From: Haliotis rufescens
Lineage: Eukaryota
Assembly (NCBI RefSeq): GCF_023055435.1
Contig: NW_025964223.1
Coordinates: 38,440,001 to 38,504,000 of the forward strand
Length of the DNA: 64,000 nucleotides
Reading direction: 5' to 3'
A program made the position numbers and the translations under genes. Positions 31,813 to 58,246 of the stretch are shown here, one piece after another. The notes under the pieces are model-generated. The model ran no database searches. It saw nothing but the letters and a program-made list of their open reading frames with translations, and had not been told where the DNA came from. The stretch's first letter is position 1, and each line of letters starts with the position of its first letter.

Positions 31813-31816
31813 AGTT

Positions 31817-34448: not shown

Positions 34449-34663
34449 GATAAACCGAAACTGAAAGTACAAAGTATCACAATACGTCTTATTCAACCCT
34501 ACAGCCACCGCGTGCTGGTATGACGCATGCTTTATTGATTGCGCTTCTTGGAAATGTAAGGGATTGTGCTTATTTTCACTTTCTGTTTACCTATCCTAAA
34601 GCATCTAAGATAGCGACTACAGCACAACACATTTCCTGATCGACAAGGAAGGACACGTCCTGG
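34449..34663 (+). promoter_or_regulatory. Promoter and non-coding first exon of ART copy 1, with ISRE/IRF-E, CRE/AP-1 and GAS-like motifs
   Basis: AAACCGAAACTGAAAGT 34452-34468; TGACGCA 34521-27; TTCTTGGAA 34545-53; reverse AAACAGAAAGTGAAAA 34573-88; donor tgg|gtatgt at 34663/4; all conserved in position in copy 3. Confidence 0.65.
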
Positions 34664-34816
34664 GTATGTTGAAACACTACTATCATTTTCTTTTTCTCAT
34701 TTATTTTAGAAAATATCTAAAAAAATTATGCCTTTACAATACATGATTTCAGTCTCGATGTTGAGGGAAAAGACTGAATGAAGGAGTAATATTTTCTGTG
34801 TTTTAGAAGTCAAAAC

Positions 34817-35992
34817 ATGGCAACTATTACCTTTTACCACTACACTGACAAGGCTGGGAAGGACGCTATCGTCCGTCAGAAACGAATCCGCCAAAGTGAT
34901 GGGGCCAACGATGCACGGTATGGGACAGGTGGGTCACAAAACAACAAAAGTATTATTCTACATATTTTACCTCACAATCCGGTTTAAGACAAACAATCCT
35001 GTAAATGAAGCTAAACTTTTGTCACATTGATCACTCACTGGGATTGACCTGAATGACGTCAAATAACATTGATAACGGTCGGACAAGTTTGAAGTTGTAG
35101 GGCAACATGGCGCGTTCTGTTCGACTTTAGAACTTTCTGATTTCACAAAAACACGAGTTGATAGACGGATGGCGATAGGTTAATTGTCAATAATCAATGG
35201 TGATACATCGATTTAAAGTAAAGTATCCGATTCAATAGTTAGCATCTTTGGTGCGATACACTATCGATAGTTTCGACAGATGTAATTAGATTAACTATTA
35301 TGATAATCATTAACTTCTTAAATCGATTTGTAACCAAACTGCACCTTATTTCAGTGTATCCATTCAAAACGATTTTATCAAACATTGAAAAATAAATATT
35401 TTGAGCGTTTCGTTTAATTTGATCCCGTGCATAGAATACTCAAGGAGACCAGAAAATCTGAAAATATAATGTTTATCTCCTACAAAACCGTCTCCTATCA
35501 TCTTCCAAAGGAATCTTGAACTTATCAAATAATGCAAGGAATGTGGGAAGGAATTCTTCATATTTTCGCCATACTGCTGTAATATTTATATGATGTTTGC
35601 ACAAGTATCGTATTAACAATTTCAAACCTATTTATATCATGCCTGAACACGTACCGTAATAACTATTGCAAGCCTACTGCAGTAAGAAATGTGCCTCGGT
35701 GTTCCAGTACTCACTGATTTCTAACTGCTCATTCATTCCAGTGTAATTGTTTACAGGTGTGTACGGAACAAGCCTATCTCCGTCTGAAGGACTCAAGAAA
35801 ATAGCCTGGAACAATTGGGATGGTATTGTCAACCTAAACAAGGGGATGCTCATGAGAGCGGCATGGGCAATCGAGGTGAAGCTACCAAAGTCCCAGGTTA
35901 AAGAAGTTGGGTCAAAGCGGGATATCTTGATTTACACTGGCGGTGACCTTCAACTTGACGACTACGTCTGGGAGGTCATCCAGGTTGCCTAG
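34817..35992 (+). CDS. Stand-alone Tox-ART-HYD1-like ADP-ribosyltransferase, copy 1 (115 aa, no signal peptide); join(34817..34928,35757..35992)
   Basis: Spliced protein MATITFYHYTDKAGKDAIVRQKRIRQSDGANDARYGTG|VYGTSLSPSEGLKKIAWNNWDG...WAIEVKLP...KRDILIYTGGDLQLDDYVWEVIQVA; GT-AG phase-1 intron; acceptor ttttag at 34806 and aaacATGG context; H8 (YHYT), Y40 (GxGVY), D93 (RDI). Confidence 0.85.
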
Positions 35993-36872
35993 AAGTGAAC
36001 GAGGATATGGTCGCATTTGCATTATTAAAAGTTTTATTACTTTACAAACTGAATCAGAAAGATAGATTAAGAATATTACGTGCTACAACATAAGATGAGT
36101 GCAGGATGTACACAATGTATGTATTATTCTGAAAAGCAGAGGTGTCGGCAATGTAGAGAACAGACCAGTTACCAACATGACACTCAGTGGCTTAGTTTGT
36201 TACTAACTCAGCTCAGCAGTAAATATTGACCTTCAATTGTACTCCGTGTTCCTTATTTATTCGTCAGTGTATTTATCACAACTCTCACATGTTTCAGTGA
36301 TATAATGATTTACGTGACAGTGTTGCGTAATTCTTAACATACAGCTGAACAATTGTACTCCGTGTTCCTTATGTACTCGTCAGTGTGTTTATCACAACGC
36401 TCACACGATAAACAATATGTCACTGACACATTGACATAATAAATGTACTTCTTCATCCACTCGAACATGCTGCAAACAATTGAAACAATACAAAATACAT
36501 CACAGACAACATACATAATCCAGTATTGTATATAGAGTATTTGGGATCTCATGTTTAAAGTTTTTCTTGCACGTTGCATGCTTATTATAATTACTTGCAT
36601 ATTTTATGTTCTGATTCATATTAATATGTATTTAATTAACATATACATATTATGTGTAACATTAACTTAATGCATTTACTGCCATTTAATGGTTTAATAT
36701 CACAAAAGACAGCCCAAATTACCCCTCTTTTAGTGCAGCCTAACGTGAAGACTGGACTAATTCTAATGAACCAAGATGAAATTGGCTTTAACGTACGTTG
36801 CGCTCAAGATTACTGCACTCATATAGCGACCTGCATGTACATGTAGTGTTATTTTTAGGGTTAGTGTAAGCG

Positions 36873-36959
36873 GTTGTGTGTGCGCGTGTGCGCGTGTGCG
36901 CGTGTGTGAGGCTGTTTGTGCGCGTGCGCGTGCGCGTGCGCGTGCGTGTGCGTGTGTGC
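36873..36959. repeat. (GT/GC)n alternating purine-pyrimidine microsatellite
   Basis: Visible directly. Confidence 0.9.
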
Positions 36960-36995
36960 ACTAGTGAGTAGTAATGCCGGTTTTATATAGCTTGC

Positions 36996-37333
36996 CAACT
37001 CACGGCAAAAAATGCAGTTTCCGGTATCCGGATGCCTTCACTTATTCAAAACGCATCAGGGTATCCGGTGGCAAATGCCTTGCCGGATACCAGATCCGTG
37101 GTAATCGTCATTGGACACCTCACCGGAAAGCATGCCTCCTGGAATCCGGGTATCCGGCACCGGATACCTCACTGGATACCTCAATCTGGGTGTCCAAGGA
37201 TCCGGCAGCAGATACCTCATTCTGAGTTTCATTAAGTGTGAAACACCTAAAAATATATTTGAAACTAACCAAGAAAACTGAACATTGCTGAAGGTATCCG
37301 GCAGGTATCCGGATGCACTTTTTTTTCGAGATG
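36996..37333. mobile_element. Non-autonomous TIR element with many GTATCCGG/CCGGATAC internal motifs
   Basis: Imperfect termini caactcacggcaaaaaatgca / tgcacttttttttcgagatg; about 10 gtatcc/ggatac motifs in both orientations. Confidence 0.5.
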
Positions 37334-37569
37334 TCTTTTTTCTAGTAAATAATGTTAGCCTGGGCATATCAGGTAGCTGTTGTAATATTCTGTGTTACTT
37401 TAGTTGAAAATATCCCCTTACATTTGAGATCAATGGGCATGTTCTTTTGGTGAAAACATCTTCAATTTCATATATATTTCATTTTAGATGTTCAGAGTAT
37501 TGAATGAAAAACTATCTGTCCTGGTGTGATGATATCCTTAAATTTCATCTTCATATTCCCAGTTTTGTC

Positions 37570-37692
37570 TAGCCTAGTGGTTGAAGCGTTCGATTCACCA
37601 CATCGGTACAATGAGTGAAGCCCATTGCTTGGTGTCACCCATCATGATATTGTTGGAATATTGCTCAAAATGACATAACACCATACTCACTC
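37570..37692 (+). mobile_element. SINE family B, internally deleted
   Basis: agcctagtggttgaagcgttcgattc...ccatactcactc. Confidence 0.7.
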
Positions 37693-38929
37693 TGAAACAA
37701 AAAACAAAAAGTCATTGGCTGTGTGCTCACTTGGGCCTTTGTTCCTGGTGAGATTAAAAGATTATTTTGGAACGGTATCAGTACTTGGTACATCTAGACA
37801 GACGAGTTTCATTGAAGTTTGCAACAGAATATAATTGCCCCAAGTAGATGCATAAGACTTGTGGCATCCACAGAAAACACCTAATAAAGTATCGGTACAT
37901 AAAAATATCAATGTCATTTTTCTACTGACATGGAACTAAAAACTTTGTTCGGTGAGATGTATTAATTGTAGGAAAACATTCAGGGCATTAGTATATTTGA
38001 TAAATGTTCAGCACCTATGTTATGGCTGATCAATATTATATTCCTTTATGCTAATGAAGCAAAACAAAGAATTTGCTTAGATAAAAAATCATATTTATTG
38101 ATTTTATTATGACAGTTCATTGGTTCAGTAACCAGAGGCGTTTGCAAGAACTTTCAAAAACAGAAACAGATGCTTCAATGCCATTTTCTAAATAAACACA
38201 TGAGTCAAGTGTCAGAAGAATTTCAAAGTAGAAGTCAATTATGTTTGTGCAGTAAACCACAAAAGTCATTCAGATTTGTATAGTCAGTGTCGGTGTACAC
38301 CACATAAACATAGTCACACTGCTGTGGTATCAATTCCTTCAGATTTGATTAGCGTCGTAATAAAACAACCCACAGAATCACACTGATGTGGCATTTTTCA
38401 TTCAGAATAATCACTTTCTGAGGTGAACCTGTTGGTTGTTCTGGGGAGGATTATTCATCATCCGTTGAGTCCTTTGTATGACTTATCTGAGCTGGTGTCA
38501 CTGTGAAATCCAGGTACCTGAAACAAGTTATAACATCTTTAAAAGCTTGTTATTAAAACTATAAGAAACACACATGTTTTGACAAAGGGTAAAAAGTTGT
38601 TTTCTCGATCAGTAAGGTCATGACAATTTATCAAGCAACTGATATTTAACCATGGTAACCAATCTTAGAACATCTAAATAAGCCATAGCAAACCGTAAAT
38701 TTTACAGAAAATACAAAATTGTATCTGATCTTCTAAAAACAATTCCTGTAGTGCCACAAGGCTCACCTGAAGTTTTTCTGGAATGTTTGCATTACATGAA
38801 CAAGGAAGGGTAAACAAGGCAATGCAAAATTGCATAAAATAGGTTCTTATACATAAAAACAGAACCATTCATAACTATCAAAATTGTCAATCACACAAGT
38901 CATGTAAGTCATCTCAAAATACTATATAA

Positions 38930-39087
38930 TGAGTGAGCAAGTTTGTATAGTTTCACACGGCTTTTAGCAATATTCTAGCAATATCTCGACGGGGACACCA
39001 GAAATGGGTTTTCACACAGTACCGATGTGGGGAATAGAACCCGGGGCTTCAGAGAGCGCTTTACCCACTAGGCTACCCTATCATCCC
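38930..39087 (-). mobile_element. SINE family B
   Basis: Matches 30266-30429. Confidence 0.78.
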
Positions 39088-40435
39088 AAATACAAAAGAA
39101 AGTAACATTAGGATATCATACAACAGATATTTTCGCCAAATATCAAGTCATTATACAACTGATTGAATTAGAGGAGCAAATACATTTCAATGAAGCAGCT
39201 GAATCAGGCTAAATTTGAATCGTTCCTTGCTTTAGTTGCAATGGGAGCCACATTGGAAATAATAATCTCACTTATTATTGATATTTTATATCTACCATTA
39301 ATTGGTAGGCCAGAATAGACACTGATAAAAAAATTCAACTGAAAAGAACTACCTGAACCATCAACTAAAAACTATGTATATAACATTTTAGGGACCGGTC
39401 ATGTACTGGTATGTTCTTATACATTTTTACACGACTCTCCCAGAAAAGGAAAAATGCAAACCACTTTATATTTTATTATCCATTTTTCATAAACCTTCCC
39501 TAGAGACTGTCATATATTTGGGTGGCCTTCCCTGTTTGTTCTGACCTTAATTCGGCTACTGGCAATATTCATGAGTAAAGTCATTATCATATTTTTATCA
39601 TTTACCCTATCGTTTTTGAAAATTAATTTAATATGAAGATTAACAATTACACGAAAAACTGCCAAATATATTGTTCTGGCAAAGTGTAATCACAATTAAG
39701 TAGTTCTGTTCGGTTTTGGAACTTTTCAATGGTAATTGTAAATAAATGTGTATATTTCCTATTCGAATACTCATTTGAGTGTTATAAAGTTAAACAGTAT
39801 TGGATCTATCGTCTGTTTCTAAATACAGTGGAATCCAACTTTGACTTGCGTGACATAATTAAATCATACCCCAAGTTCTTTATGCATTGCTATGCATTGT
39901 TATGCATCTGCATAGAGTGGCCAATGTCCTTGCCTGACATGTAGTTTGCTACAAGGGAGAATCCATTAAGTACAGGTTGTGTCCAGACAAACTGTCTGAT
40001 AATCTCAAAGGCGGCCTTGGTAGCATCAAGGATGTAGCTAATCCTAAATAAACATTAAACAAGTGACCTCATCTCTTCTACAGAACATATGATCAATGCC
40101 TGCCCCACCTTTGGTGTAAATCATCTCGCTACGATCACAACAGCTCATCAGCAAGACGAACTCAATGTCAACTCATTGTGGATTAGGGATTAACAGGGCA
40201 ATTAGTGTCGAGTGGGTATTATCACTCGCAATTGTCCGTTAATTACTTAATTGACTAGTGACGGCTTCTCCAAATTAAGTAAGCAGCTCTAAAAGCCCCC
40301 AACATTAAAAACTCAACCAACCCCGCCCAAAAAGTAAATAATCTCGCCAACCACTTTTCGGCCCTTAGCAGTAACACCAACTTTAGCCAAAAATTCCAAG
40401 ATAAACTTAAAACAGAAAAAAACAACACAAAACAT

Positions 40436-41552
40436 GCACAATATGTCCCTATGGTCTGGAGTTAGATGTTGTGTTAGTCCCGGTGCTGGGGCTCTGTATG
40501 GGGTTGACACAGGCACAACATGTCCCTATGGTCTGGAGTTAGATGGGGTGTTAGACCCGGTGCTGGGGCTCTGTATGGGGGTTACACAGGCACAACATGG
40601 CCGTATGGTCTAGTGTTAGATGCAGTGTTAGACCCGGTGCTGGGGCTCTGTATGGGGATGACACAGGCACAACATGTCTAGAGTTAAGTGTGGTGTTAGA
40701 CCCGGTGCTGGGGCTCTGTATTGGGGTGACACAGGCACAACATGTCCGTATAATCTGGAGTTAGATGTTGTGTTAGTCCCGGTGCTGGGGCTCTGTATGG
40801 GGTTGACACAGGCACAACATGTCCCTATGGTCTGGAGTTAGATGGGGTGTTAGACCCGGTGCTGGGGCTCTGTATGGGGGTTACACAGGCACAACATGGC
40901 CGTATGGTCTGGTGTTAGATGCAGTGTTAGACCCGGTGCTGGGGCTCTGTATGGGGATGACACAGGCACAACATGTCTAGAGTTAAGTGTGGTGTTAGAC
41001 CCGGTGCTGGGGCTCTGTATTGGGGTGACACAGGCACAACATGTCCGTATGGTCTGGTGTTAGATGCGGTGTTAGACCCGGTGCTGGGGCTCTGTATGGG
41101 GATGACACAGGCACAACATGTCTAGAGTTAAGTGTGGTGTTAGACCTGGTGCTGGGGCTCTGTATTGGGGTGACACAGGCACAACATGGCCGTATGGTCT
41201 GGAGTAAGATGTAGTGTTAGACCCGGTGCTGGGGCTCTGTATGGGGATGACAGAGGCACAACATGTCTAGAGTTAAGTGTGGTGTTAGACCCGGTGCTGG
41301 GGCTCTGTATTGGGGTGACACAGGCACAACATGTCCGTATGGTCTGGAGTTAGATGTTGTGTTAGACCCGGTGCTGGGGCTCTGTATGGGGATGACACAG
41401 GCACAACATGTCTAGAGTTAAGTGTGGTGTTAGACCCGGTGCTGGGGCTCTGTATTGGGGTGACACAGGCACAACATGTCCGTATGGTCTGGAGTTACAT
41501 GTTGTGTTAGACCCGGTGCTGGGGCTCTGTATGGGGTTGACACAGGCACATT
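40436..41552. repeat. Minisatellite of mixed 77- and 68-bp units with a 299-bp higher-order repeat
   Basis: Core gttagacccggtgctggggctctgtatgggg..gacacaggcacaacatg; variant gttagtccc recurs at 40473 and 40772. Confidence 0.95.
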
Positions 41553-43611
41553 CTGGAGTTGTTCTCAGTGTACAGTTATATGGGCCTTCGCGTTCTCTCA
41601 GGGCGAATCTTGGATTTTCCGCGACCATATGTTCCTGGCACTCACAAGGGGCGCAACTGTGCACAGCGAATTGAGACGACTGGGCCAACAATGAAAGGAT
41701 TCAACAAGGATCGTTTTCAACACTACACACAGGAAGGATAATTCAGCAACGTGAGTATAACACTGCGCAGATAATGAAATAACAGCCGATTAACCATGTA
41801 GCTACCTTGACTTCACTTCCGACACCAGTATAAAATATGAATACAATTGCGTGTTTGGGGATTCGAACGCGCAACCAACATGGGGACACATATTAAAGGG
41901 CCGACATCCACACATATACAGTGATTTATATTTATCTCAACATTCTCAACCTGATAACCATATTACCAGACACAGGTTTCGGTTATCACCAATTAGACAT
42001 GACAAGCATTGCATAATGTTAAAGTGCAATAACATTGACAAACGGCAAACTAGTGCATCAGAATTGAATGGATAAGAATTACAATGACCATAGCAAGCAT
42101 GATGGCGCCTCAAATAACGCAGAAATCTTTCAGCAGCTGGTACCCCTGTGATAATGCCATTTTGCTGGGAAACACATTTAGACGGATTTTATTCTGACGT
42201 TATTGGATTTGTTATTAATGACAATAAATCCCAAACTACCACTCACTCCGTTTGTTAATTGCTCGGCGTGTCTCCGTCCCTTCATGACAAATATGTATAA
42301 TCTTTAGTATGTGTTATTGTAGTGCAGTTGATTTAAACATATTGAAATTTTGTCATTACGAATTTTTATTTTGTGTGAGGAAGAATTTAATTGATACCAT
42401 ATGTTCAATTTATGTATTCATAATAAACATATAAATATGTTGATTCAGTCGAACACTACAGTGCTTGTTGTTCTGAGTAACAAGGTAAGAACTGCTTCTG
42501 TTCTGATTTCTCTTGCATTGTTTGATGTAAGTGGCTGAGGTATGTCTTCATTGAAACAACAAATATTTTCTGACGATAAGGAACGTGGTTGGACATTTCT
42601 ATATAAGAAGCGACGTTCCGGTGTAGGTTGTAACACCGATATAGAGCAGGACATTTTACCCAATCCGCTGAAGAGACCTGGTAGGTTAGACTTGGCCTGC
42701 ACCGGATACACGTCAAACGTATGGTCTAAATAATTTGTTGTGGCCGATCTTGTGTTATTTATGGCAAACATCGTCTAGATCACCCAACTCAAAGTGTGAT
42801 ACTAGATACATGTCAATATAAAACATCATACTCGGTTATCTGCCGAAACGGATTCAATTGGGCGTGAGAGGCGAAATAGCGCTGACAATATGAATGGATC
42901 ACTGAAAATCAGTAGTGACACCAAGTGTTTACGAAAGGTAAGCCTACCTCCTGGCCTACTGGTAGCACCAGCCACTCACATAACTTGCATAATTTACTAT
43001 ACTCACCAGTCACACATCCACCCTAGGTTCATCTCCATCAAAGGGCCATGGCTAAAGGGTGATGAAAAACGAAGGACAGTACAACAGCAATCATTATCTC
43101 ATAGATGTGATATCAAAACTAGATCAGAAGGCATGCAATTTATCCATGCAGAAACTAGTGGTTGCATCAGCCTTGATGGGACAGAAGTCAGTGATGCATA
43201 CAGAAAAGATATCTCGCCCAAAACACCTGGCATAAACACGGCAAATGTATCTTTGCATTTTCATTGTTGTTGCATTTTTATTGCATTATGACATTATGTA
43301 AAATCACTTCCAACCATTCTCTTCATACAGTGAAACACCTCCAGGCCGGAAGTCTTCATATAATAAATGTTGCATTACTACTAACCAATAATTTGTAAAT
43401 CAGGAAATATATACATTGGGATTAACGGCTTCCACTGCACCTATACAGCAAATATAATTAAGACAGCTGACAGGAAAAGGGATAGAAATACAAGCAGAAA
43501 AAAGGTATTGAAATTATTATGGAAACCGTTTAAATAACTATCTTGAATCACTAGATCCACACCAGCTCGATATCAGCTCTTAAAATAGTCGCAAACTGGT
43601 GACCCTGTTTT

Positions 43612-43825
43612 ATTTGTTTGTTTCTTCACGCCTCACGCAATATTCCAGCTATGTGACGGCGATCTGTAAATAATCGAGTCTGGACCAGACAATCCATTGA
43701 TTGGCATTATGAGCATTGGGATACGATGCATGCATCAACCAAGTCAGCGAGCCTGACCTCCCGATCCCGTTAATCGCCTCTTACGACAACCTTAGTCGCC
43801 TTTTACGGCAAGGGTTACTGAAGAC
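43612..43825 (-). mobile_element. SINE family A
   Basis: Matches 13205 and 27330. Confidence 0.82.
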
Positions 43826-44223
43826 GTGTCCTGGCGACCCTGTAAGATATACCATCGATATAAGTCACATTATCTGTTGATTGATGTGAGTACGTTATTC
43901 TTATTGTCGCCCTATTTTCAATGAATTACGTTTTTACAAATATTTAAGTTTCGGTAGAAATCATTTTGAAACTAAAAAGGAAGGGAACAACGTTACACAA
44001 CAGGCTAGTTTAGAAACAACAGTAGGGGTGACTACCTGGCCTAAGGTCCTTAGGCATATATACAGCCAAGTGGACTGGACAGTATAGATATGCAAGGACA
44101 TTCCTTGGTCCTTGAAATATTGTCAACTTGTACAATGGATTGGAAGTCCGAATGGAAATACACCCTTCTATTCCCAGGGAATATCCTTGCATATCTAACA
44201 GGTCCACCTTAAAAATTGTCTAC

Positions 44224-44404
44224 CAGCAACCCAGCTTGTCATAAGAGGCGACTAAATGCATCGACCACATGGATGATAGCATGGCATTGTATCCCAATTG
44301 CGTGGACAGATGCTCATGATACCGATCACTGGATTACCTGGTCCAAACTCGATTATTCGCAGATCGCCGTCATATAACTGGAGTGCTGTCATATTGCTGA
44401 GTGC
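44224..44404 (+). mobile_element. SINE family A, degenerate
   Basis: cttgtcataagaggcgacta...ctggattacctggtcca...atattgctgagtgc. Confidence 0.72.
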
Positions 44405-44441
44405 AAATGATATATTGTCAATATGTTTGCACAGTACCAAG

Positions 44442-45609
44442 ATGGAATTGAAGACGCAGTGTATCTGTCTCCAGATCGTGTTTTTGCTGATATCCCGTGA
44501 GTATGATAACAATTTGTTGTAATTTCGGTGAAAAGGCCAAGAAGACCACTGTGTTTGTGGTATTTGTTTCAGCTGGTATTATGACAACTGCTGACAGATC
44601 ATAATACCGATAATCGTATCGACATTTACAGTGGCTGCAATAGTTCTACATGAGCCAATACTTCTAATTAATTGCCGTCATCAATTGTTCATGAACAATT
44701 ATATTTTCAGTCACCCCTGGGTATGCCACAGTCTTCTATCACTACACGGACGAAGCTGGCGCGGACGCTATAGAAAAGAGTGGCTACATACGACAGAGCA
44801 CAAATCCGAGATACGCTCATTTTGGAAAAGGTATGTATAATGCAAATCATATTACAAACGCGAGGTTCAGGATTACATGCATATTTATAGGGACACGCAT
44901 GTACCTGTGTGTGTGTGTGTGTGTGTGTGTGATTCCACACTAATGCCGCTTTTATAGTGCCAGCCCACTGAGATACCATACCGTAGTTCAACATGGATAC
45001 CCCACTCAGACACAGTATACTGAACAGTCCTTGTTTTACCCCCTTATCGACGAGCGCAAGAACAAGTATAATCTTTTAACGTCTTTTGTACTATATCATT
45101 GGTAAACGTTACCTTTATGTCAAAATGATAAACATTTAAATATCCTGTCAAGGAAAGAGGGGGTATCAGATGGGCCCTTTTCCAACGGGGTCTGCATGCT
45201 ATCAGAAATTTCAAAATGTTAAAAATAAACGTTATTTTGTATGAAAGCTGTGAACGAGTATTAGACTTTCATCATAACAACACTTCATATTTTGGCTTTA
45301 ATGACGTACACAATTTTTGGATCAAGGAAGCGTCACCGAGAACTGTTTGTATCAGCGCCTTACTGACAATCTCTAATGATTTCAGGAGTGTATGGCACTG
45401 GAATGGGTCCTGCCTCGGGCAAGGCGGCAATTGCTAAAAACAACTACCAAGGCGGATGGGAGGCTAACTTGAGAAGAGGGCGAGTAGATTATGCATTCAG
45501 GTTCGACTTGCCCAGTTATAAAGTGAATCGGGTATCAAAGGATCGTGACATTCTCCTGTACAAAGGTGATCTCATTCTCAAGGACAACCCCTATAAAGTG
45601 TACGCGTGA
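44442..45609 (+). CDS. Tox-ART-HYD1-like ADP-ribosyltransferase, copy 2 (132 aa, predicted signal peptide); join(44442..44496,44711..44830,45386..45609)
   Basis: Spliced protein MELKTQCICLQIVFLLISLTPGYATVFYHYTDEAGADAIEKSGYIRQSTNPRYAHFGKG|VYGTGMGPASGKAAIAKNNYQGGWEANLRRGRVDYAFRFDLPSYKVNRVSKDRDILLYKGDLILKDNPYKVYA; donors gtgagt (44497) and gtatgt (44831), acceptors ttttcag and atttcag, all phase 1; second intron at the same Gly codon as in copies 1 and 3; aataaa at ~45757. Confidence 0.82.
44906..45090 (-). mobile_element. SINE family C fragment inside an ART copy 2 intron
   Basis: Matches 2482-2690. Confidence 0.65.
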
Positions 45610-46939: not shown

Positions 46940-47790
46940 TATGATGTTATCATTGGTATTATGCACAAACTGAAAATGTGGAAACATAATTCGAATGAAC
47001 CCATTCTGCCCCATACAGCTGTTAACCAAATTTTGGCTGCCCAAAGTAAAAAGCTTCCAGGTGTTCCCACTGACAGTGCCTCACCATATCATAAACATTA
47101 CATGTTAGCATCACTACATTAATTGTTTGATCAAGAACTTGGTATAAATGACAGATGAAATAATGCCACATAAAAGCCCAGTTTGTTAACTGAGGAAACA
47201 ATCTGCCACATCAAAACATATGTACTATAAGCCTTTGGCTTGACACTAAAACCCGAAGACGTGTCAATTCCTCTTTTGTACTGGATTTCAAAGCTCCGAA
47301 AATATCCATACACAGAGACAAATATTGCTGGGTCTAGCAAATGTCTCAAAGATTACCATAATCATTGGTACGACCAGGGAAGGCCTTTCTTCTGTTCACA
47401 GAAAGTATTTTTGACAAGTGGAAGTAGTATGTGTAGATTCTCAAAATCTCAAAGGATTTGCTTGATTTGCTTGATGTCTCAATAAAGACACAAGTTCAAT
47501 TATGTCAAAACATTTGATTTTCACTTTGTACTCCACTGTTCCAAACGACAAACCAAAGGAAAACCTTTATTCTGTAATCCTTGGGCCATTTTCAATAAAC
47601 GTTGCGGTGTCTCTATTTTCCGGATAATTTGTCAAATATGAAATCAAGTGTCTGAAGTTACCGAGAAATAAATACGTGAGATGCTGGACTTCCTCCTAGG
47701 TGCAATCTATGTGACATTTGGGACTAGAACATTTCAACAAGAGGTAGGTGTACCCATGGGTACCTATTGTGCTCCACTACGAGCTGATTT
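46940..47790 (+). mobile_element. Decayed Penelope-like retroelement RT fragment
   Basis: VPTDSAS (cf. VPADKA), IPLLYWISKLRKYPY...IAGSSKC, TFDF..LYSTVP, EMLDFLLGAIYVTFG..TFQQEVGVPMGTYCAPL; many stops and frameshifts. Confidence 0.8.
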
Positions 47791-48429
47791 GGTTGGGTTT
47801 TATATGCTATAAGCATTATCCCGCGATATGCCAAGGAGAGGCACGGGCCACCGAGCCGTGGATGCCCGTGCCTATAATAAAAACAGAAGATGAGATTGGG
47901 TTAAATGGCCGAGGGTGTGCAGGTACTAGTGGGCTACTTAGCTGCTAATTGTGTATACCAAAATGCTACCGTTGCCATGGCCACGCGCGTGGCCAACGGC
48001 GATTGCAGCTAGCGCTGCTGGCCTGAGACTGCTTCCGCTGTCCGGCCCCCACGGTAGCATATTTAACCGCTACCATTGCTTGGAAACTCCCACGCTGCCA
48101 AAAGCAGCTCCACGCTGCTGGCCTAAGTCAGACTACCGCTGCCCGGCCCCAGGTAGCCGGCCAAAGCAGATCCCACTGCCCGGCCCCATTAGCAAAACCA
48201 TTGTGCGGCTCCCGCGCCGCGGACCCAACTGTCAGCTACCGCTTGACAAGACGACTTCCGCCGCCGGGCCCATATACGTGGCAATTGTTTGCCCCAACGT
48301 ATGTTATTTTACGATTCCCCGGCTGAAAAGTCGGGAAAGACAAGGTTCCCACTGAGAAGCAGGTAACCCCGAAAAGGTTCCCGCTGAAAAGCAGGTAGCC
48401 TTAAGCACGAGTATTATTTTGGAAGCAAG

Positions 48430-48873
48430 TTAATTTGTTACTAGCAGTGTAGCCCACAAGAACCCCGCCACAAAGCACCAGAGTGCTACCCCACACCCAC
48501 GGCCACGCGATACGCGGAGATAGCATTGTTGCCCGGCTTGCCTATGTACTGAAAGGAAACACAAACCTGTGGAGATAACAAGCGCCCGGGCTTGCAATAA
48601 ATTGTCCGTAAACACACACAGTCCTTTGTTACTGAGGTGGACGCCCTCCCAGGCGTTCCATGTCTTGTCTGATGCCAGGATCTGGGGATGTGGCACCATT
48701 GTACCGCCGAGCTCTTTGACTCGGTTGGCCAGTCGACGGTTGATATTCTTCCGCATCCCCTCGATCTTTAGTGGGTCCCTGGCATCGTGCCAGTAGCGCC
48801 TGTGCAGCATTGAGGATACGATGATCTTGGTGTCAGGAAGCTGGGGTTGTATCCGAAGGATTGATGCCACCAT
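48430..48873 (-). pseudogene. SGNH/GDSL hydrolase C-terminal half carried by the retrotransposon
   Basis: LPDTKIIVSSMLHRRYW...RKNINRR...EGVHLSNKG (block V, cf. DGVHL); the N-terminal GDS block is absent. Confidence 0.72.
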
Positions 48874-48874
48874 G

Positions 48875-50188
48875 TCAAGGTAGCGTCAAGTCCCGTGTAG
48901 TTCCATCCGTCACCCACTGGGGTGGCCATGCGCCGTTAAACCATTTGCCCTGCATGTAGGCCCCAAAGCCGGCGCCACCCGCTGCGTCTGAAAACAGCTG
49001 GAGGAAATCGCTGTCCACCCATAGTTGGTCCTGAAACACTGAAATGCCTTTATAACTCGTAAGAAATGTTAACCACATTTTAGGTCTTCCTTGACCCAGC
49101 TGGTAATCCTAATGTGGTGAAATGGTTGCTTACCTTTGCTAAGCAGATCGGTTAGCCTGCGGCTGAATGCCCTTGCCATTGGTATAGCCCTGCACATAAA
49201 GTTAAGCTTGCCTATGAGGGACTGAAGGGCCCTTTTTTGTGACCTTGATGTTACCTGTTGACAGGATGTCTTGGATTTCCCTTGTTGCCTCCTTGATCTT
49301 GGACTCTGGGATTCTGATCTGCATTGCAATGGTGTCGATTTCCAGCCCTAGGAATGTCAGTTTGGTTGTGGGGCCCACCGTCTTGTCGTGCGCAGTAGGA
49401 ACCCCAAGCTGTTCTAGTGTATTCACGCATCCGTTGAGGTTGTCTGAGCAGTGGCTGGTGCCTGCTGTGCCCCCCGTTAGGAAGTCATCCAGGTAATGCA
49501 TGATCTGACACGTTGGAAGATGCGATTGCATGCACCATTTCAAGAAGGTACTAAACGTTTCAAATATGGCGCAAGATATGGAGCAGCCAAATGGTAGGCA
49601 TTTATCGAAATAGAACTCACCTTCGAATCTGATGCCTAGCAGCTCGAAATCGGATGGGTGGACTGGTATAATTCTAAAGGCCGACTGAATGTCGAATTTT
49701 GCTAGTAGTGCTCCCTTTCCCAGTTGTTGAACCATATGGGTAGCTTCATCAAATCTGGCGTACACAACGGAGCAGGCCTCTGTGTCTATGAAGTTATTTA
49801 TAGATTTACCCCTGGGATAGGATAGATGGTGAATTAGACGGAATTCCTCCGCATGCTTACCCAGGTGCTGACCATATCCTGGCTGCTTCTTGGGCACCAG
49901 GCCTATTGGGGATACTTGGAGGTTGTCTAGGGGGGTGTCCTTGAAGGGGCCCGCCATCCTGCCAAGGTCGACTTCCTTTTGTAGTTTTTGTTTCACGTAG
50001 CCTGCCGTGTCTTGGTGCGTGGCTGAACGCAAGTTTCGTGCCAGGCGACCCGTGCGGCTTCCCTGGAACTCGAGCTTAAAGCCAGAGCTAAAACCTACCC
50101 ATAAATAATTTGCATCTCTGTAATTGACCCTAGCATATTGGCGTAACCAGGGTGCCATTTCATTGAGATCCACGGGGGAAGGGGCCAT
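48875..50188 (-). pseudogene. Ngaro/DIRS RT-RNase H ORF, frameshifted and truncated
   Basis: SPIGLVPKK, FRLIHHLSYP, KFDIQSAFR, LPFGCSIS, YLDDF, LTFLGLEID, LQSLIGKLNF; frameshifts near 49230 and 49075. Confidence 0.9.
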
Positions 50189-50509
50189 TGAATTTACCTG
50201 CCTTGACGGCTGGTTTTCTGTTAGGCAAAAGGCTGATTGGGCTTGTATGGGGTCGGTTGGACCCCATTCCCTCGAAAGCAGGTCCTAGAGCTATGGGAAT
50301 GTTTGCCACACTTACCGCATTTGTGAGTGTACTTACAGTTGACCCTGCTACAGCCAAATTTATTGAAATCCCAGCATACCTGACTGGCGATGTACGTGAG
50401 ATGCTGGACTTCCTCCTAGGTGCAATCTATGTGACATTTGGGACTAGAACATTTCAACAAGAGGTAGGTGTACCCATGGGTACCTATTGTGCTCCACTAC
50501 ATGCTGATT

Positions 50510-50652
50510 TGGTTGGGTTTTTTATGCTATAAGCAATATTCCAGCAATGTCAACACCAGAAATGGGCTTCACACACTGTTCCCGTATGGGCAATCGAATC
50601 CAAGTCTTCGGCGTGACAAGCGAACGTTTTAACCATAGATAATCACCGCCCC
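50510..50652 (-). mobile_element. SINE family B
   Basis: gcaatattccagcaat...caccagaaatgggcttcacaca...gtcttcggcgtgacaagcgaacg. Confidence 0.75.
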
Positions 50653-51227
50653 AAAAATGTATATAAAAACCAAACAATATTACAATGTCATACACACCGA
50701 GTTGCGGTTTGAGTCAATAACTCAATAAGGGTTGTTGTAAATGATCCAACACCAAACTCTCACTCCGTTTGTTAACTGCAAGATGCGCCCCACGCTGTTG
50801 ATGATAATCTATAGTATGAGATGTTGTTGTAAAGTAAATTTATATTTTTTACTAAAATTGCCAACTTGAATGTTGATTGTTTGATATGAATAATTTTAAT
50901 GGATACCAAATGTTCTATTTATGTAAGTGTCTAAGGGCGTACGTTTCGGCCCTCGGATGGTAGCTCAGGGCGATGACTGAAGACAAAACTCAGGGGTGAA
51001 GTTTAAGACGACAGCAGACATGTTTATTGTTGATGGGTTGGTATAAATCGATAGGGTACAGGTTGATAATAATGTAACGCACATCGGGACCGAGTGGTCA
51101 ATGTTCCCGGTGCGGGGACCCGCTTCTGTGTATTCTCTGGCATTAATAGACATTAATAGATAGCGCTACGGATTAAACGTCCCGCCTGGAGGTGCATTAA
51201 AGGTCCTGCTTATAATTGGAGGAGATA

Positions 51228-51600
51228 CGCCGAGTGTTTGCTAAGTTAAACTCACACCTTCACCAAATTTCAAAACACCAAACCGGTAAATGCCTCCACT
51301 GCAACTTAAAAGAAACGCCTGAACACGTAATGCTATATTGCACACATTACCAGCAACACAGAAACAACACCCCAATCCACACAAAATTGCAACAATCAAA
51401 GCACTAGGCATATATCTAATCAAAACAGGCCTACTTGGCCACATTTTAAAAAAAGTACAGCAAACAAACTGCCAATAAACCCTAAAATTCTAAACCTATA
51501 AAAACACACAAACTGCACCTAAGCCCCCCCCCAAATTAAGTAAGCAACCGTAAAAGCCCCACCTAGGTTGCCTCGCCTTTTCGGACATACCTTTTTCCAC
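51228..51600 (+). mobile_element. LINE (I/Nimb-like) ORF2 C-terminal CCHC knuckle and 3' end
   Basis: LNSHLHQISKHQTGKCLHCNLKETPEHVMLYCTHYQQHR; the 3' motif ccaaattaagtaagca....taaaagcccc also occurs at ~40270. Confidence 0.65.
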
Positions 51601-52717
51601 CAAACACTAAATGGCCTTGCGGGCCCGTGCGCGAAATAAGCATATGTCGGAAAGCGCACGTTAAATTCCCAATTCAAGTAAGTAAGATTGTCTGCTGTAT
51701 ACAATGGGAATAGAATTTCGGTGCATTTTAGAAACATATTGAAACAATTAGGTATTTTGGATAAATTAAGAAAAAGTATTGAAATGGTTTGCACTATAAC
51801 AATACCCCTGAACGTCATGGAGATTTTGTCCTCAAGGGCGTTTTAAAAATAGTGACAATATTTAGTACAAGTATACAGTAAAATGCATGTGACATCAACA
51901 GGTTGACAAGTAGTTGTTCCAAGCACTGGTCGTGACTCAGATGAATAAAATGACATTAGATAAGATATACATGCTTGTACAAGTAAACAAGTGAATAACA
52001 GCATTGTCAATATCCGTGAAACAACTATTCATGACATCAACAAGTTGAGGAGGTTACGGCTCGTACACACAAAATACAGGTGAGCGGAGATTCCGGCTCA
52101 TACACAAAGAACACTGGAAGAGTTTCCACCGAGCGGCACATCCTGTCTGCGGTCGCCCTTGCAGTCGAAATACAAGACTGCTGGTTGCATTTAGTATCAC
52201 AGGTATCACGTTGAAACAGACAATAAACATAAGATACACTGAAGACGTAGAAACAAAAACATAATGTGCGTAAAGCATTGTCGTTTGCATATGAAAGTAA
52301 TATTTTCATGATAACAGTAAGAGTCCAGACTCGGCAAGGCTAGCAGGTGTGAGGTGTGACCTGCGCTAAAAAGTAGAATGTGCATGCAAAACCTAACCAA
52401 CTTCTTAAGTCTAAACTGGAATGTAATGATATTTGAACGAATCATATTTTTTTGTGCCCGAGACCATTAAAGGTTTGATCGCACGAATGTACATCAATTT
52501 CGCTGCTATCATTATGAAGCACAAAATCACGCTGACAAAACAAAGAGTTAGGATACAGCCCGTATACACAGCCTCCACTTAATAAGCTTGATAATCAAGG
52601 AGGATCCCTAACTTATTATACTTCTACAATCGCTGCTACTACATGGAACCATTTTATCTGTTTTCATAATGGGTACAAATAATTTCAGTGCTTACATACT
52701 AAAAAAGGAATAAATGA

Positions 52718-53512
52718 CGGGAGCTCGGTAATGGTTTGGGCGTGTACCTCTCATGATTGCAGGTTGGATTTGGTCACCATCAGGGGCAACTGAACAGGGG
52801 CTCAGTACATCCGGGACGTTTTGAGGCAAGTCGTTGTTACTCATTTTGACAAACACCATCTTGCTACTCGACCTCAGTACATGGATGACAATGCCAGGCC
52901 TCATCGTTTGCATACAGTCGTGGATTACATGAGGGCAAATGCAATAACGACTCTACCCTCGCCAGCAATGAGCCCAGATTTGAACCCCCTTGAACATGTT
53001 TGGGATATTCTGGGGCGGCGCATACAGGCACGAGATCCTCCTGTACAAGATTTACGCCAATTGGAAGCAGCATTGCATCAGGAGTGGTTGTTGTTGACCC
53101 ATCAACAGATCCAAGTCTGACTGGAGGCATGAGACGTAGGGTGGAATGCGTCATCCGGGCACGTGGCAGTTACACCCGCTACTGATCTGTTTCACGTGTC
53201 ATGTCAAGTAGAGACTTGAAGGAACATTTTCACATGAAACATCAAATGTAACTCGTTTACTTAATCCTGTAGCTCCATACTTTTTTTAGGTATTGGCTAA
53301 AGTCAAAAACAGTACTTGTGTTACAATGATGTTTTTGTCAGTAAATTTCAATCACAACTTACCAATATCTTCTTTATTTGATGTCAAATGTATGTTCTAT
53401 CCGATGACATTGGTATGGCCCAGCTCCTGTGATCAGTTATCCCATGCCATGATTTTTGCCATTTGTCATGGTTCAGAAATAGGGGTGTGCTTAACTTTTT
53501 TCTTTGTGTATG
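52718..53512 (+). mobile_element. Second Tc1-family element, 3' half only
   Basis: SVMVW, MDDNARPHR, SPDLNPLEHVWDILGRR, GGMRRRVECVIRARGSYTRY (ends 53185); probable right TIR ...gtgcttaacttttttctttgtgta. Confidence 0.88.
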
Positions 53513-54339
53513 TATTGTCACACACAAATATCGGCAGGCACATGCTGAAGAGTCTTGAGTGTTGTAGCATGGTTGGAAGTTGATGTACTCGCATGATTAC
53601 ATGAATATTGTCTGGATGTTATTGTCAATAATTATCACGATTGCTGGTTCAGGCTGCTGACATTCAGGTAGGCTGGGCTGTCTGCCTGTCGTCTGTCAAG
53701 ATGGCGTCTACGCTGCTTTTTTCACCCATCACCTCTGAACTACCATTTGCTTTGCTGCGGTAGGTTGGTAGGGGGGTCGTGCATGAGTCACAGCAAACTC
53801 ACACTACCCGGATTCTCCACCATTTATAATAAACCTTATGACCTGTATAATACCTTTAAGGTTTACGTTTGGTCTAGGCTGATTATAATACCTAGAATTT
53901 GATGTCGGGGAATTAGCTTGGAACCGCACACCTTACGACAACAAAGAGAAGCATCTATTAGTGGCATGTCTTTATTCGGTATATCTCATCAGTGAGGTAC
54001 CCTGAATAAAGACTGTTAATTATACCACAGATGCTCTTAGGTCATGGTCGCATGTTCAATTATCACTAACTTAAACAATACCTACACAATGTTGCTAATC
54101 TAATGTGCTGACTGTCTGAATTTAGAGGTTACCTCAAAGTTTTGAAGGACATGGGTTTGCAGAAATGACTAAAATGACATAAGTTTTCTCGGAGAGAATG
54201 TTATCACAAAATAATGTTTACTTCTCTCGCCGGACATGTAGTCTTAACGATTAGCATATAACCCTTATACACTTAATCTTGGGAATGAAGGCAGGCGTAT
54301 ATCAACATTGACTGATAATAGACTTCGGATGGAACATGC

Positions 54340-54510
54340 ATGTAGCAAAGCAACAGAGTGGAAACGAACAGTGAAGAAGATGATCGCAGAGCACCAGACA
54401 TCATCCTGGACCCATCGTCTGAAGACAGACCTGGATCTATGTCACTTCGACGAGATCCAACTCAGCACCCAACCACACATGGCATGGTCAGTAGCTGTAA
54501 CTTTCCTATG
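54340..54510 (+). mobile_element. Short non-LTR retrotransposon ORF2 C-terminal remnant
   Basis: KATEWKRTVKKMI..HQ..SW..RL..D.D...F..IQ...QPH..W resembles invertebrate LINE tails; by resemblance only. Confidence 0.4.
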
Positions 54511-54529
54511 GAGGAATATAGATAAAAAT

Positions 54530-55692
54530 TATAAGGGTCAGCTCTAGTATAAGGATAAGGGTCAGCTCTCTGTTTTAGGATTAGGGTCAGCTCTGTGTTT
54601 AGGATTAGGGTCAGTTCTAGGTTTAAGATTTTGGTTAGCTCTAGGTTTAAGATTAGGGTCAGCTCTCTGTTTAGGATTGGAGTCAGCTCACTGTTTAGGA
54701 TTAGGGTCAGTTCTAAGTTTAAGATTTTGGTCAGCTCTAGGTTTAGGATTAGGGTCAGCTCCAGGTTTAGGATTAGGGTCAGCTCTCTCTTTAGGATTAG
54801 GGTCAGTTCTCTGTTTAGGATTAGGGTCAGTTCTAGGTTTAAGATTTTGATCAGCTCTAGGTTTAAGATTAGGGTCAGCTCTCTGTTTAGGATTAGGGTC
54901 AGTTCTCTGTTTAGGATTAGGGTCAGTTCTAGGTTTAAGATTTTGGTCAGCTCTCTGTTTAGGATAAGGGTCAGCTCCAGTTTTAGGATTAGGGTCAGCT
55001 CTCTCTTTAGGATTAGGGTCAGTTCTCTGTTTAGGATTAGGGTTAGTTCTAGGTTTAAGATTTTGGTCAGCTCTAGGTTTAAGATTAGGGTCAGCTCCTG
55101 GTTTATGATTAGGGTCAGCTCCCTGTTTAGGATTAGGGTCAGCTCTAGGTTAAGGATTGGGGTCAGTTCTCGGTTTAGGATTGGGGTCAGTTCCAGGTTT
55201 AGGATAAGGGTCAGCTCTATGTTTATGATTAGGGTCAGTTCTCTGTTTACGTTTAGGGTCAGCTCTATGTTTATGATTAGGGTCAGCTCTCTGTTTAGGA
55301 TTAGGGTCAGTTCTAGGTTTTAGGATTAGGGTCAGTTCTAGGTTTAAGATTAGGGTCAGCTCTAGGTTTAAGATAAGGGTCAATTCTAGGTTAGGATTAG
55401 GGTCAGTTCTCTGTTTAGGATTAGGGCCAGCTCTCTGTTTAGGATTAGGGTCAGCTCCATGTTTAGGATTAGGGTCAGCTCTAGGTTTAGGATTAGGGTC
55501 AGCTCTAGGTTTAGGATTAGGGTCAGCTCCAGGTTTAGGATTAGGGTCAGCTCCAGGTTTAAGATTAGGGTCAGCTCCAGGTTTAAGATTAGGGTCAGCT
55601 CCAGGTTTAGGATTAGGGCCAGCTCTCTGTTTAGGATTAGGGTCAGTTCTCTGTTTAGGATTAGGCTCAGTTCTAGGTTAAGGATGGGAGTC
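54530..55692. repeat. 24-bp minisatellite (gtttaggattagggtcagctctct) containing TTAGGG
   Basis: About 48 tandem units; the 242-aa ORF is an artefact of the 24-bp period. Confidence 0.97.
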
Positions 55693-58000
55693 ATACTTTG
55701 ACAAAACCCATACATGAAAACAGGAGATCTAAAATAGTGTTTGTCTAACAACTTATAACAATGTTAATATCGGGTGTTACCACCATTTGTGGGGATACAG
55801 GGGAGGTAGCGGTGGCGCAATGCCGACACCAGATGATTGAAAACAGCCTCGGGGATGTTGTTCCAAATGAGGTGGGGTAAAAATATTTATGCTTCATAAC
55901 CCTCACCCCACACCTGACAATGAGCACCTGATACAATCATTGTGTGCTATTCACATTAACAAATCACGTGTGTATATCATGCCTCCAACAAACACGCAAA
56001 CATTGAAATTGTGCTCCGTGCATGAACATGCACTGCAAATTGTGAATCACGACCTTAGAGTCGAGGAGATGTCTTCATGAATGATGTCTTTCATGTACAG
56101 AAAGATGCATTATTTAATTTCTTAATAAATATATTTACAGTAACTTTATGTGAAGCACAGTTACTATTTTGTTAGTATGATATATACAGGAACAGCGAAG
56201 GCGATAAGTGTTAAGTTACTTGAACGTATACGTAATGCCTGATAAAGGAAGATGTAAGTGAATGGATACAACAAATGGATCCATATCAAGATATAAGTCA
56301 ATAAATTTTCTGTAGTTTTATCATAAAAAATCGAATCGATCGTGTTTGGCGTCTGCATCAATCACAGTGGGCGGAGCTTATTTACGGTTGCGCTATAAAT
56401 AGCAAAGCACATGGTCATGTATACATGTGACACATTCAATGCATTTGTGGTCAAAGTGTATTGTGTTGTATATTTGTACGGCAGAACAGCAGCAGAACAT
56501 CAGTTTCGGTTAATGTAACAGTAACGATACTTAAATACGAAATTGACGACGCGATTCTATCAGTTCAATCCGAAAATTACAGATATTTGTTTAGTTTTGG
56601 TCATTTGCATTCAACAGTTAGATTTGTGCCACACAATAATCAGTTTATATTCATAAAACTTAAATTATTACACAGATTTTTCAACTAGTGCTTAGGGAGG
56701 GGCCTAATTTGAAGCACCAGAAGTTGCGCCAATATTTCTCTGCTTGACTACATTAGATGAATATGTCACGTGTATCAACATAACAATGCACATAAGCAAC
56801 TGGTAAATAAGTAACGAAATATACTAGATGTTTTGACCTACAGAAGGCGTATCCAGATAATATTGTACTTAAACGAAAACTCAAATACACATATTCCAAG
56901 AAAACTTTAATTATGAATTTCCTTTTCTTTCACAGAATTTTCACACACAAAACTGAGTTTGATCATTAGATGCACACTTGTCCCATGTATTTTTTGTTCG
57001 GGGTATTTGGGTACACTTCGCGCACATGTTTTAAAATACAATCTGGGATCCGTTTCCCGTTTTGTCCACACCAATCCTTCAGCTGCTGCAACGTTTAATT
57101 CCGTTTCTTCAAGGCCAAGTATCTACGATCTCTCCAAACACTTCGTTTATTTAGCTCAGTCCAGAAGCAATGTGCCAATCAACAGGGATCTGGGTCACTG
57201 GGACCCGCCAAGTTTCACGGATCGAGTTACTTCGGTATGAGGAGCTTCATCGGACAAGTGAGACTTTGCCAAAATACATTGCTACTGGGCAATGAAAAAA
57301 CGACACTTGAAAATATTTTTGACCATTACCAGGGTTTTTTACACGATCGTTGTCATCCAGATTCCAGATGAGGCAAGACGAACACAACGAAAAAAAACAT
57401 TGTTGAAATCACCGATTGCCGTATATATTGTGAGAAATGCTATTTATAAACTGCAGATATACCGTACACCACAGGAAAACGATTGGTGTCCCAACACATA
57501 GTATGTTTCTTGTTCATTTACACTGCTCTTTTGTATCACGACGAACGTATTTCGTTCTCGTCCAGAGATCTAGAACTATAATTTGTGTGTTGGACTGTGT
57601 TGGATAATTCGTGGAAATTCCACGGTATCATTTTATGAAGGTGTGAAGACGACATGGCAGGTAGGTTTTGAAAAGTCTTGTTGAAAAGTCTTGGAATCGT
57701 TTGGTAGATATTTATATTACCATTAAAACTTACGTCCTTGTTGTCAAACGGCCCACGTGGGTGGGTGTTTACATGACGTCACCCGTTTACGCATTAACCA
57801 ATGAAATGTATGTGTTAGCATGACGTCATATTGACCTGTCAGATCACTTGTATAAGCTCCGCCCACTAGAGTGCGGTAGTTACTACCGCAGATGGGGCTT
57901 TAAGTATGGCAACATATGTACAGTGAAAGAGGATCTAGGGTCGCTGGCGAAGGCAGCTACACTAACAGTGTCAGGGTGACATTTTATTCATTCGGCGAAG

Positions 58001-58246
58001 GGAAAAACGAAATTGAAAGTACAAAATTCTATATAACGTCCTATTCAGTCCAGCAGACACATTATCCTATCACGTGTTTTGGGCGTTTATGACTTGTATG
58101 ACTCATGTTTGTTTATTGCCTAAATGCGTTTCGAGGAAACGTAAGGCATCACTTTCTGTTTATCAATATAAAGCCTCTAACCTAGCGACTACAACATAAC
58201 TACATGTAAACTCATTTCCTGACCGACAAGAAAGGGCGCGTTCCGG
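58001..58246 (+). promoter_or_regulatory. Promoter and non-coding first exon of ART copy 3, with ISRE/IRF-E, AP-1, GAS and TATA motifs
   Basis: GGAAAAACGAAATTGAAAGT 58001-20; TGACTCA 58099-105; TTCGAGGAA 58130-38; reverse AAACAGAAAGTGA 58149-61; TATAAAG 58167-73; donor cgg|gtatgt at 58246/7. Confidence 0.68.

Follow-up and report, generated by a model that had tools for sequence, protein, structure and literature searches.

The stretch analysed here, a 64-kb window of the Haliotis rufescens genome (64,000 nucleotides of contig NW_025964223.1, positions 38,440,001 to 38,504,000 of the forward strand, numbered below from its first letter), carries two duplicates of ~2 kb, at 34352–36332 and 57899–59895, delimited by self-BLAST and global alignment. 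Each duplicate holds a gene, referred to below as copy 1 and copy 3 (gene identifiers LOC124125330 and LOC124125321), that encodes a 115-aa leaderless protein with a predicted ADP-ribosyltransferase (ART) fold of the Pfam family Tox-ART-HYD1. A third gene in the window (copy 2, 44.7–45.6 kb) is more distant: the coding-exon translations of copy 1 recur in copy 3 with 86% (exon 2) and 80.5% identity and in copy 2 with 53% and 41% (tblastn), and an additional exon of copy 2 encodes a hydrophobic leader (signal peptide). The original prediction for this DNA held that copies 1 and 3 keep a promoter like that of an interferon-stimulated gene (ISG), composed of interferon-stimulated response element (ISRE)-like, AP-1/cAMP response element (CRE)-like, gamma-activated sequence (GAS)-like and TATA elements, and that both genes are induced by virus or double-stranded RNA. 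As set out below, the GAAA-repeat element of this promoter is a credible predicted interferon regulatory factor (IRF) site that is also present at two ISG-type genes of this genome. The features of the two duplicates and of copy 2 are the following (negative and positive numbers are relative to the 5' end of the copy-1 RNA at 34590).

34352–34589, plus strand: copy-1 promoter, the duplicated segment 5' of the RNA start, defined by homology with copy 3
34452–34468 (−138 to −122), plus strand: copy-1 distal triple GAAANN element AAACCGAAACTGAAAGT (ISRE/IRF-E-like, IRF-E being the IRF element), with the 13-mer at 34456–34468
34521–34527 (−69 to −63), plus strand: copy-1 TGACGCA, a bZIP (AP-1/CRE-like) word, from the sequence
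34545–34553 (−45 to −37), plus strand: copy-1 TTCTTGGAA, a GAS-like palindrome, from the sequence
34574–34589 (−16 to −1), minus strand: copy-1 proximal reverse GAAA element, reading AAACAGAAAGTGAAAA on the minus strand, with the match at 34574–34583
34576–34589 (−14 to −1), given in plus-strand letters: copy-1 proximal block TCACTTTCTGTTTA, from the sequence
34590–34663, plus strand: copy-1 exon 1, non-coding, without ATG, containing CCTAAAG (X1 contig 34590–34662, spliced GT..AG)
34807–34928, plus strand: copy-1 exon 2, ATG at 34817, no signal peptide, HYD1 signature FYHYT (splice joint and Pfam PF15633)
35757–36236, plus strand: copy-1 exon 3, stop at 35990–35992, poly(A) near 36236 (contigs in all four RNA-like runs)
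44442–45609, plus strand: copy 2, a paralogue that has a signal-peptide exon and serves as a contrast to the leaderless copies
57899–58162, plus strand: copy-3 promoter, aligned with 34352–34589
58004–58020, plus strand: copy-3 distal element AAAACGAAATTGAAAGT, from the sequence
58099–58105, plus strand: copy-3 TGACTCA, a perfect AP-1-type heptamer, from the sequence
58130–58138, plus strand: copy-3 TTCGAGGAA, GAS-like, from the sequence
58149–58162, minus strand: copy-3 proximal TCACTTTCTGTTTA, with the AANNGAAA half-site only, by alignment
58167–58173, plus strand: copy-3 TATAAAG, a TATA box only if the transcription start site (TSS) is shifted ~30 bp downstream relative to copy 1
58373–58494, plus strand: copy-3 exon 2, ATG at 58383 (tblastn 86%, PF15633 24.8 bits, boundaries by alignment)
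59314–59793, plus strand: copy-3 exon 3, coding sequence (CDS) to 59549, 3' end placed by alignment

Copy 1 has three exons, which are joined by splicing, and the first of them is short and non-coding. Contigs from four RNA-like runs (from four studies; the runs are coded and without condition labels) were placed on 34000–36600, and the splice joint 34928/35757 (GT..AG) was recovered in all four of them, the joint 34663/34807 in one (run X1, depth 2401). The 5' end of the X1 contig, found in this one run of the four, is at 34590 and is immediately preceded by sequencing-adapter letters, and none of the four runs yielded contigs on 34087–34589; the copy-1 mRNA starts at ~34590. Exon 1 is free of ATG and the first ATG is encountered at 34817, as a result of which the copy-1 protein has no leader. 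At the other end of the gene, a loose A-run past 36236 in run X8 marks the copy-1 poly(A) site, and one contig of run X2 extends to 36600. An X2 contig departs from copy 1 at 36010 and goes on as the copy-3 3' untranslated region (UTR), which identifies it as an assembly chimera formed at the conserved end of the CDS; since it continues into the copy-3 3'UTR, copy 3 is transcribed as well as copy 1. Judged by alignment, copy 3 has the exon structure of copy 1. Part of the window was found in 14 RNA-like runs from four studies.

These transcript data bear directly on the proposed promoter architecture. The placement of the promoter just upstream of the non-coding first exon agrees with the RNA evidence, every listed motif being located between −138 and −1 of the RNA 5' end. 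A TSS near 34625 had been proposed for copy 1, and the RNA contig starts at 34590 instead. A TATA box is generally located ~25–30 bp upstream of the start; the CCTAAAG of copy 1 (34595–34601), which had been set against the TATAAAG of copy 3, lies within the transcript at +6 to +12, and because it is transcribed copy 1 has no TATA box at this position. Reading the copy-1 sequence around −30, we saw no TATA-like word there either.

The motifs themselves, their positions and their order in copies 1 and 3 were as originally described, with a spacing that differs between the copies by indels of 26, 7 and 12 bp. Used as a DNA query against the whole genome, a 491-bp promoter segment matched only copies 1 and 3, and the homology between the two begins at 34352/57899. 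Measured from 34590, the copy-1 ISRE-like 12-mer is at −133 to −122, the copy-3 placement being by alignment only, and both copies match GAAANNGAAA(C/G)T. Two full GAAANNGAAA sites occur in copy 1 in the space of 140 bp, and the full reverse GAAAGTGAAA at the proximal element is present in copy 1 only; in copy 3 the AANNGAAA half-site is all that is left of it, because a 12-bp deletion took the third GAAA unit. The proximal TCACTTTCTGTTTA makes up the 14-bp core of an identity run of 15 columns, the joint longest of the promoter. No GAAANNGAAA was found in the 5' region of copy 2 (between 39452 and 56918). The consensus of the AP-1/CRE site is TGA(C/G)TCA or TGACGTCA, and the TATAAA of a TATA box is present in the copy-3 TATAAAG, under the limit on the TSS given above.

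Two further blocks, GTCAGGGTGACA (34419–34430, part of a TGTCA..TGACA palindrome) and TACAGTGAAAGA (34368–34379, with a third conserved GAAAG core), rank with the promoter's four longest blocks of identity and were not among the motifs first listed. Facing copy 3, just before the start of homology, a promoter-like block at 57750–57900 contains two perfect TGACGTCA, CCAAT, CACGTG and TATAAG; this block is absent upstream of copy 1.

The ISRE-like element is rare. In the 64-kb window, GAAANNGAAAGT occurs three times as compared with 0.20 expected, and none of 100 shuffles reached three. The slightly looser GAAANNGAAA[GC]T, with G or C at base 11, was absent from a background of 100 kb taken from the same genome at arbitrary round coordinates, in which the 10-mer GAAANNGAAA occurs 11 times. 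The ISRE-like 12-mer is expected ~0.001 times per 240-bp promoter. The third GAAANNGAAAGT match in the window (23991–24002, minus strand), which lies antisense inside a 365-aa open reading frame (ORF), was taken as chance. Of the ISG-like motif set, only the ISRE-like element is rarer than chance, the GAS-like and AP-1/CRE-like words being common.

The genome encodes two IRF genes (on C595 and C79), one STAT gene, STING, viperin and several Ifi-6-16-like genes, in keeping with the assumption that IRF and STAT components are present in the host. The exact copy-1 13-mer CGAAACTGAAAGT has 66 matches in 1.33 Gb as compared with 46 for the reversed control. The placed matches comprise one at ART copy 1, two at viperin, three in an Ifi-6-16-like cluster (contig C556), five in leucine-rich repeat (LRR) coding sequence and five in a tandem repeat; in the ~330 kb around all mapped ISG-type loci, 0.016 matches are expected by chance. 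At viperin, a 12-mer identical to that of ART copy 1 lies ~950 bp before the ATG. In the stored orientation, the viperin cluster has the sequence GAAACTGAAAGT-7 bp-TTCCTGGAA-7 bp-ACTTTTTCTTTC, which includes a perfect GAS; a partial duplicate of this ISRE/GAS module is located inside the viperin gene. One of the C556 matches lies 114 bp before TATAAAAG, behind which comes a short exon that lacks ATG and has a GT donor, and 1.44 kb before an Ifi-6-16-like coding exon. The other two C556 matches are 9.2 and 14.6 kb before the next Ifi-6-16-like exon; in one of these two the TATA part is missing. A candidate-gene scan of eight immune loci (64,149 bp) for the ISRE-like 12-mer gave a single GAAANNGAAA[GC]T match, at viperin; the Ifi-6-16-like match lies 2.2 kb beyond the scanned window and surfaced only via the genome-wide 13-mer search.

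Between the viperin ISRE/GAS cluster and the ATG there is an insertion of ~370 bp with terminal inverted repeats and TA-run flanks (G000:C598:276500-282500, locus 870–1245), and the viperin gene contains an inverted partial copy of its first coding exon together with the copy of the cluster. Five tandem LRR-type genes (G000:C583:10340872-10387053) carry CGAAACTGAAAGT in their CDS, illustrating that exact-word matches can be incidental, and the five matches at G000:C112:68745762-68754080 are spaced at multiples of 1577 bp, pointing to a tandem repeat.

Taken together, these results leave the reading of the ART promoter as ISG-like partly intact: the location of the promoter, the rare ISRE-like word and the occurrence of CGAAACTGAAAGT at viperin and Ifi-6-16-like genes speak for it, its GAS, AP-1/CRE and TATA parts are without statistical support, and in copy 1 the RNA contradicts the TATA part.

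For the encoded protein, exon pieces were searched separately, and the whole-protein steps used the NCBI models P0001 and P0003 (115 aa each); NCBI names the ART gene models 'uncharacterized protein' of Haliotis rufescens. Against PF15633, these models score 34.4 and 30.6 bits (cut-off 25), over profile positions 2–46 of 97 only. The exon-2 pieces alone reach 25.8 bits in copy 1 (E 1.7e-5) and 24.8 bits in copy 3, and none of the three exon-3 pieces matched PF15633. A structure model built from a 10-sequence alignment had a pLDDT (predicted local distance difference test) of 84.7 and a pTM (predicted template modelling score) of 0.81. Foldseek returned no PDB match for this model at E≤0.001. 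Nearly all of the 50 listed matches of a wide VIA-align search were ART-fold proteins, with middling Z values (6b 8.5, Tpt1 8.0, TreTu 6.9, TreX 6.7, Scabin 6.6, then PARPs, DarT and diphtheria toxin). According to the model the proteins have an ADP-ribosyltransferase fold, their NAD+-dependent activity being putative. The putative catalytic residues H8 and Y40 are kept in 9 of 10 and 10 of 10 aligned sequences, and NNWDG is invariant except for W58 (at least 90%). Relatives were found in Haliotis rubra and Pomacea canaliculata and among three metagenome proteins. In the available part of the table of Zhang et al. 2012 (PMC3482391), Tox-ART-HYD1 is given for bacteria only.

The model that we favour from these observations is one in which transcription of the ART genes would depend on a compact promoter, which in copy 1 has no TATA box, with an IRF-type site as its key element (the three GAAANN units at −138 to −122) and a second, reverse GAAA element abutting the start. 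An abalone IRF would bind the GAAA sites of the ART promoters, and the ART genes would be co-regulated with the viperin and IFI6-like genes carrying CGAAACTGAAAGT, a co-regulation that would make the ARTs part of an interferon-like antiviral programme of abalone. STAT and AP-1/ATF might optionally contribute through the GAS-like palindrome and the bZIP site. That the ART genes are induced by infection is, on this sequence evidence, a proposition for which we see the balance as even. More tentative still is the wider scenario, that a triple-GAAA-marked, IRF-driven abalone regulon might have taken over a bacterial Tox-ART-HYD1 domain, gained by horizontal transfer, as a cytosolic ADP-ribosylating effector that is induced by infection together with viperin/IFI6-like genes; we regard it as possible and rather doubtful.

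Support for an IRF-driven programme comes from several studies. Abalone viperin and IRF-1 mRNA are reported to increase after poly(I:C) (bioRxiv 10.1101/2025.04.14.648835, in its available text), oyster IRF2/8 to activate human ISRE and IFN-beta reporters (available text of PMC5557890), and oyster IRF1 and scallop IRF1/2 are said, in the accessible part of PMC13524488, to bind ISRE. The gene identifiers themselves (three LOC ids) were not found in the searched literature, a search in which supplementary tables were outside the scope.

A number of observations weigh against the model. The copy-1 5' end is given by one contig from one run, and an adapter-flanked end is also encountered mid-mRNA in run X8; the true copy-1 start may lie slightly upstream of 34590, yet not at 34625. 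Spliced transcripts are present in all four runs, with k-mer depths of hundreds to thousands in three of them, and constitutive expression fits these data equally. Outside the ISRE-like element, the proposed motifs are unremarkable: TTCNNNGAA is common (26 in the 64-kb window, ~1 per 2.5 kb, and 29 per 100 kb of background), and TGACKCA, with 14 occurrences in the window as compared with 17.8 expected, is no rarer than chance; the GAS-like, AP-1/CRE-like and TATA parts are without statistical support and add little. At viperin the module sits downstream of a TATAAAAG. Ten of the 66 CGAAACTGAAAGT matches are plainly incidental (those in LRR coding sequence and in the tandem repeat), and the copy-3 variant of the 13-mer has 43 matches as compared with 35 for its control, none of them near mapped ISG-type loci. 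The 12-mer was absent from the scanned windows of seven of the eight immune loci, including two IRF genes, STING, STAT and two other Ifi-6-16 loci. It was likewise absent within 4 kb upstream of the start-codon exon in three other HYD1 paralogues (one at C445:27.7 Mb and two on C479, the C479 pair being leaderless and the remaining one secreted).

Sequence conservation between the copies adds to these points. Ungapped identity is 79.2% in the promoter, 79.5% in exon 1, 84.1% in intron 1, 79.8% in the 3'UTR, 80.2% in the 100 bp past the poly(A) site and 89–91% in the coding exons; intron 2 has 58% identity in the global alignment, with alignable patches of 73–77% by self-BLAST. Promoter identity is therefore not above that of the UTRs and is below that of intron 1, and because it is close to UTR identity, conservation alone proves little. 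Identity runs of at least 12 columns number 4 as compared with 2.7 expected (P=0.23), and motif conservation above that of flanking promoter DNA was not detected in this comparison of two copies at 79%, which has little power. Motif core positions are conserved in 26 of 27 cases and spacer or degenerate positions in 4 of 8 (Fisher p=0.006, shuffle p=0.012), a contrast that is ascertainment-biased because the motifs were chosen for their presence in both copies. The accompanying claim, that substitutions in the ISRE-like and GAS-like sites fall in the spacers, is correct for the ISRE-like 12-mer (1 of 1) and the GAS-like site (2 of 2, TTC..GGAA being kept in both copies and two spacer bases differing); in the bZIP word the change hits the core (T/G at base 5).

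Much of this would be expected if the two promoters resembled each other by descent and the motif had arisen by chance, after a fairly recent duplication (~79% identity) of genes that are constitutive or tissue-specific and not infection-induced. Such an account is consistent with a promoter identity equal to that of the UTRs, with identity runs no longer than expected, with GAS-like and AP-1-like words that are common, with transcripts in all four runs, with other HYD1 paralogues that are without the motif, and with a 13-mer that also turns up in coding sequence and repeats. What it explains poorly is that a 12-mer with so low an expectation per promoter has two full sites in copy 1, that the exact 13-mer is found by viperin and in the Ifi-6-16-like promoter against ~0.016 chance matches, and that intron 2 fell to 58% identity while every GAAA core survived; we consider descent plus chance a possible explanation, and on the whole an unlikely one.

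The GAAA sites may also be real and serve a different end, namely lineage or basal expression in haemocytes through an IRF1/8-type or PRDM1/Blimp-like factor, with no acute antiviral signal involved. The TACAGTGAAAGA block, with its third conserved GAAAG, presumably resembles a PRDM1-type site, the high transcript depth in coded runs without condition labels would suit such a role, and oyster IRF1 and IRF8 are reported in haemocyte proliferation (available text of PMC13524488). This role is nevertheless improbable in our view, given that the site is common to viperin, which is reported as poly(I:C)-inducible in abalone, and that three runs with the same species label contain next to none of the words of the stretch, a weak hint of variable expression. 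Far less probable again is a promoter that responds mainly to stress or bacteria via the bZIP site (TGACTCA/TGACGCA), with the GAAA repeats incidental: copy 3 does carry a perfect AP-1 heptamer, and a bZIP-type word is also situated between the ISRE and the TATA box of the Ifi-6-16-like promoter, but the heptamer is no rarer than chance and its sole substitution between the copies hits a core base.

Returning to the IRF-driven model, close counterparts are found in the same genome. The viperin promoter shares CGAAACTGAAAGT with ART copy 1 and has ISRE, GAS and reverse GAAA within 50 bp; the Ifi-6-16-like promoter shares CGAAACTGAAAGT as well, with an ISRE that precedes the TATA box by ~114 bp and, like the ART genes, a first exon that is short and non-coding. 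Both differ from the ART promoters in that their flanking DNA is non-homologous, their transcript starts being putative, and the Ifi-6-16-like promoter differs further by a true TATAAAAG and by a GGAAGTTTCC word where the ARTs carry the GAS-like site.

Among vertebrates, ISG promoters with ISRE and/or GAS include those of viperin/RSAD2, IFIT, ISG15, GBP and IRF1. Like these, the ART promoters have GAAANNGAAA(C/G)T within ~150 bp of the transcript start and TTCN3GAA nearby, with elements in either orientation; unlike these, the predicted ART binding is by IRF alone, and the GAS-like word is without statistical support. Abalone is not known to have an interferon, ISGF3 or IRF9. Vertebrate interferon-induced ADP-ribosyltransferases include PARP9, 12, 13, 14 and others, which the abalone ARTs resemble as ART-fold proteins under a proposed antiviral transcription programme and from which they differ as members of another clade, the protein consisting of a single domain of 115 aa that stands alone and belongs to Tox-ART-HYD1, a family of bacterial polymorphic toxins. 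For the invertebrates, comparable IRF targets are the oyster CgIFNLP promoter (CgIRF1/8) and shrimp Vago, activated by LvIRF, and invertebrate IRFs are reported, in the available text of PMC5557890, PMC13524488 and PMC4602278, to bind or activate canonical ISRE sequences. In such mollusc and crustacean studies the assays were on mammalian ISRE reporters or on cytokine-like genes, whereas the candidate target here is an effector-type gastropod enzyme.

Little is known of the effectors in the 'interferon-like' response of molluscs, and herpesvirus is a problem in abalone aquaculture. If the ARTs are true IRF targets, an animal would have an ADP-ribosyltransferase of bacterial toxin type as an inducible defence enzyme inside its cells and, if the wider scenario is true, an invertebrate equivalent, independent in origin, of the PARPs that interferon induces. 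The 13-mer common to viperin and IFI6-like genes would moreover be a simple search word with which members of the abalone antiviral regulon could be catalogued.

The window also contains tandem arrays. A very young one at 59950–61290 (98-bp period, 97–98% identity) begins 55 bp past the duplicated segment of copy 3, and older arrays are located at 8107–9810, 17816–19159, 27695–28626, 31803–33715, 40432–41550 and 54528–55693. Between copies 2 and 3, a 328-aa ORF on the minus strand (49202–50188) has, by eye, a YLDD-type reverse-transcriptase motif.

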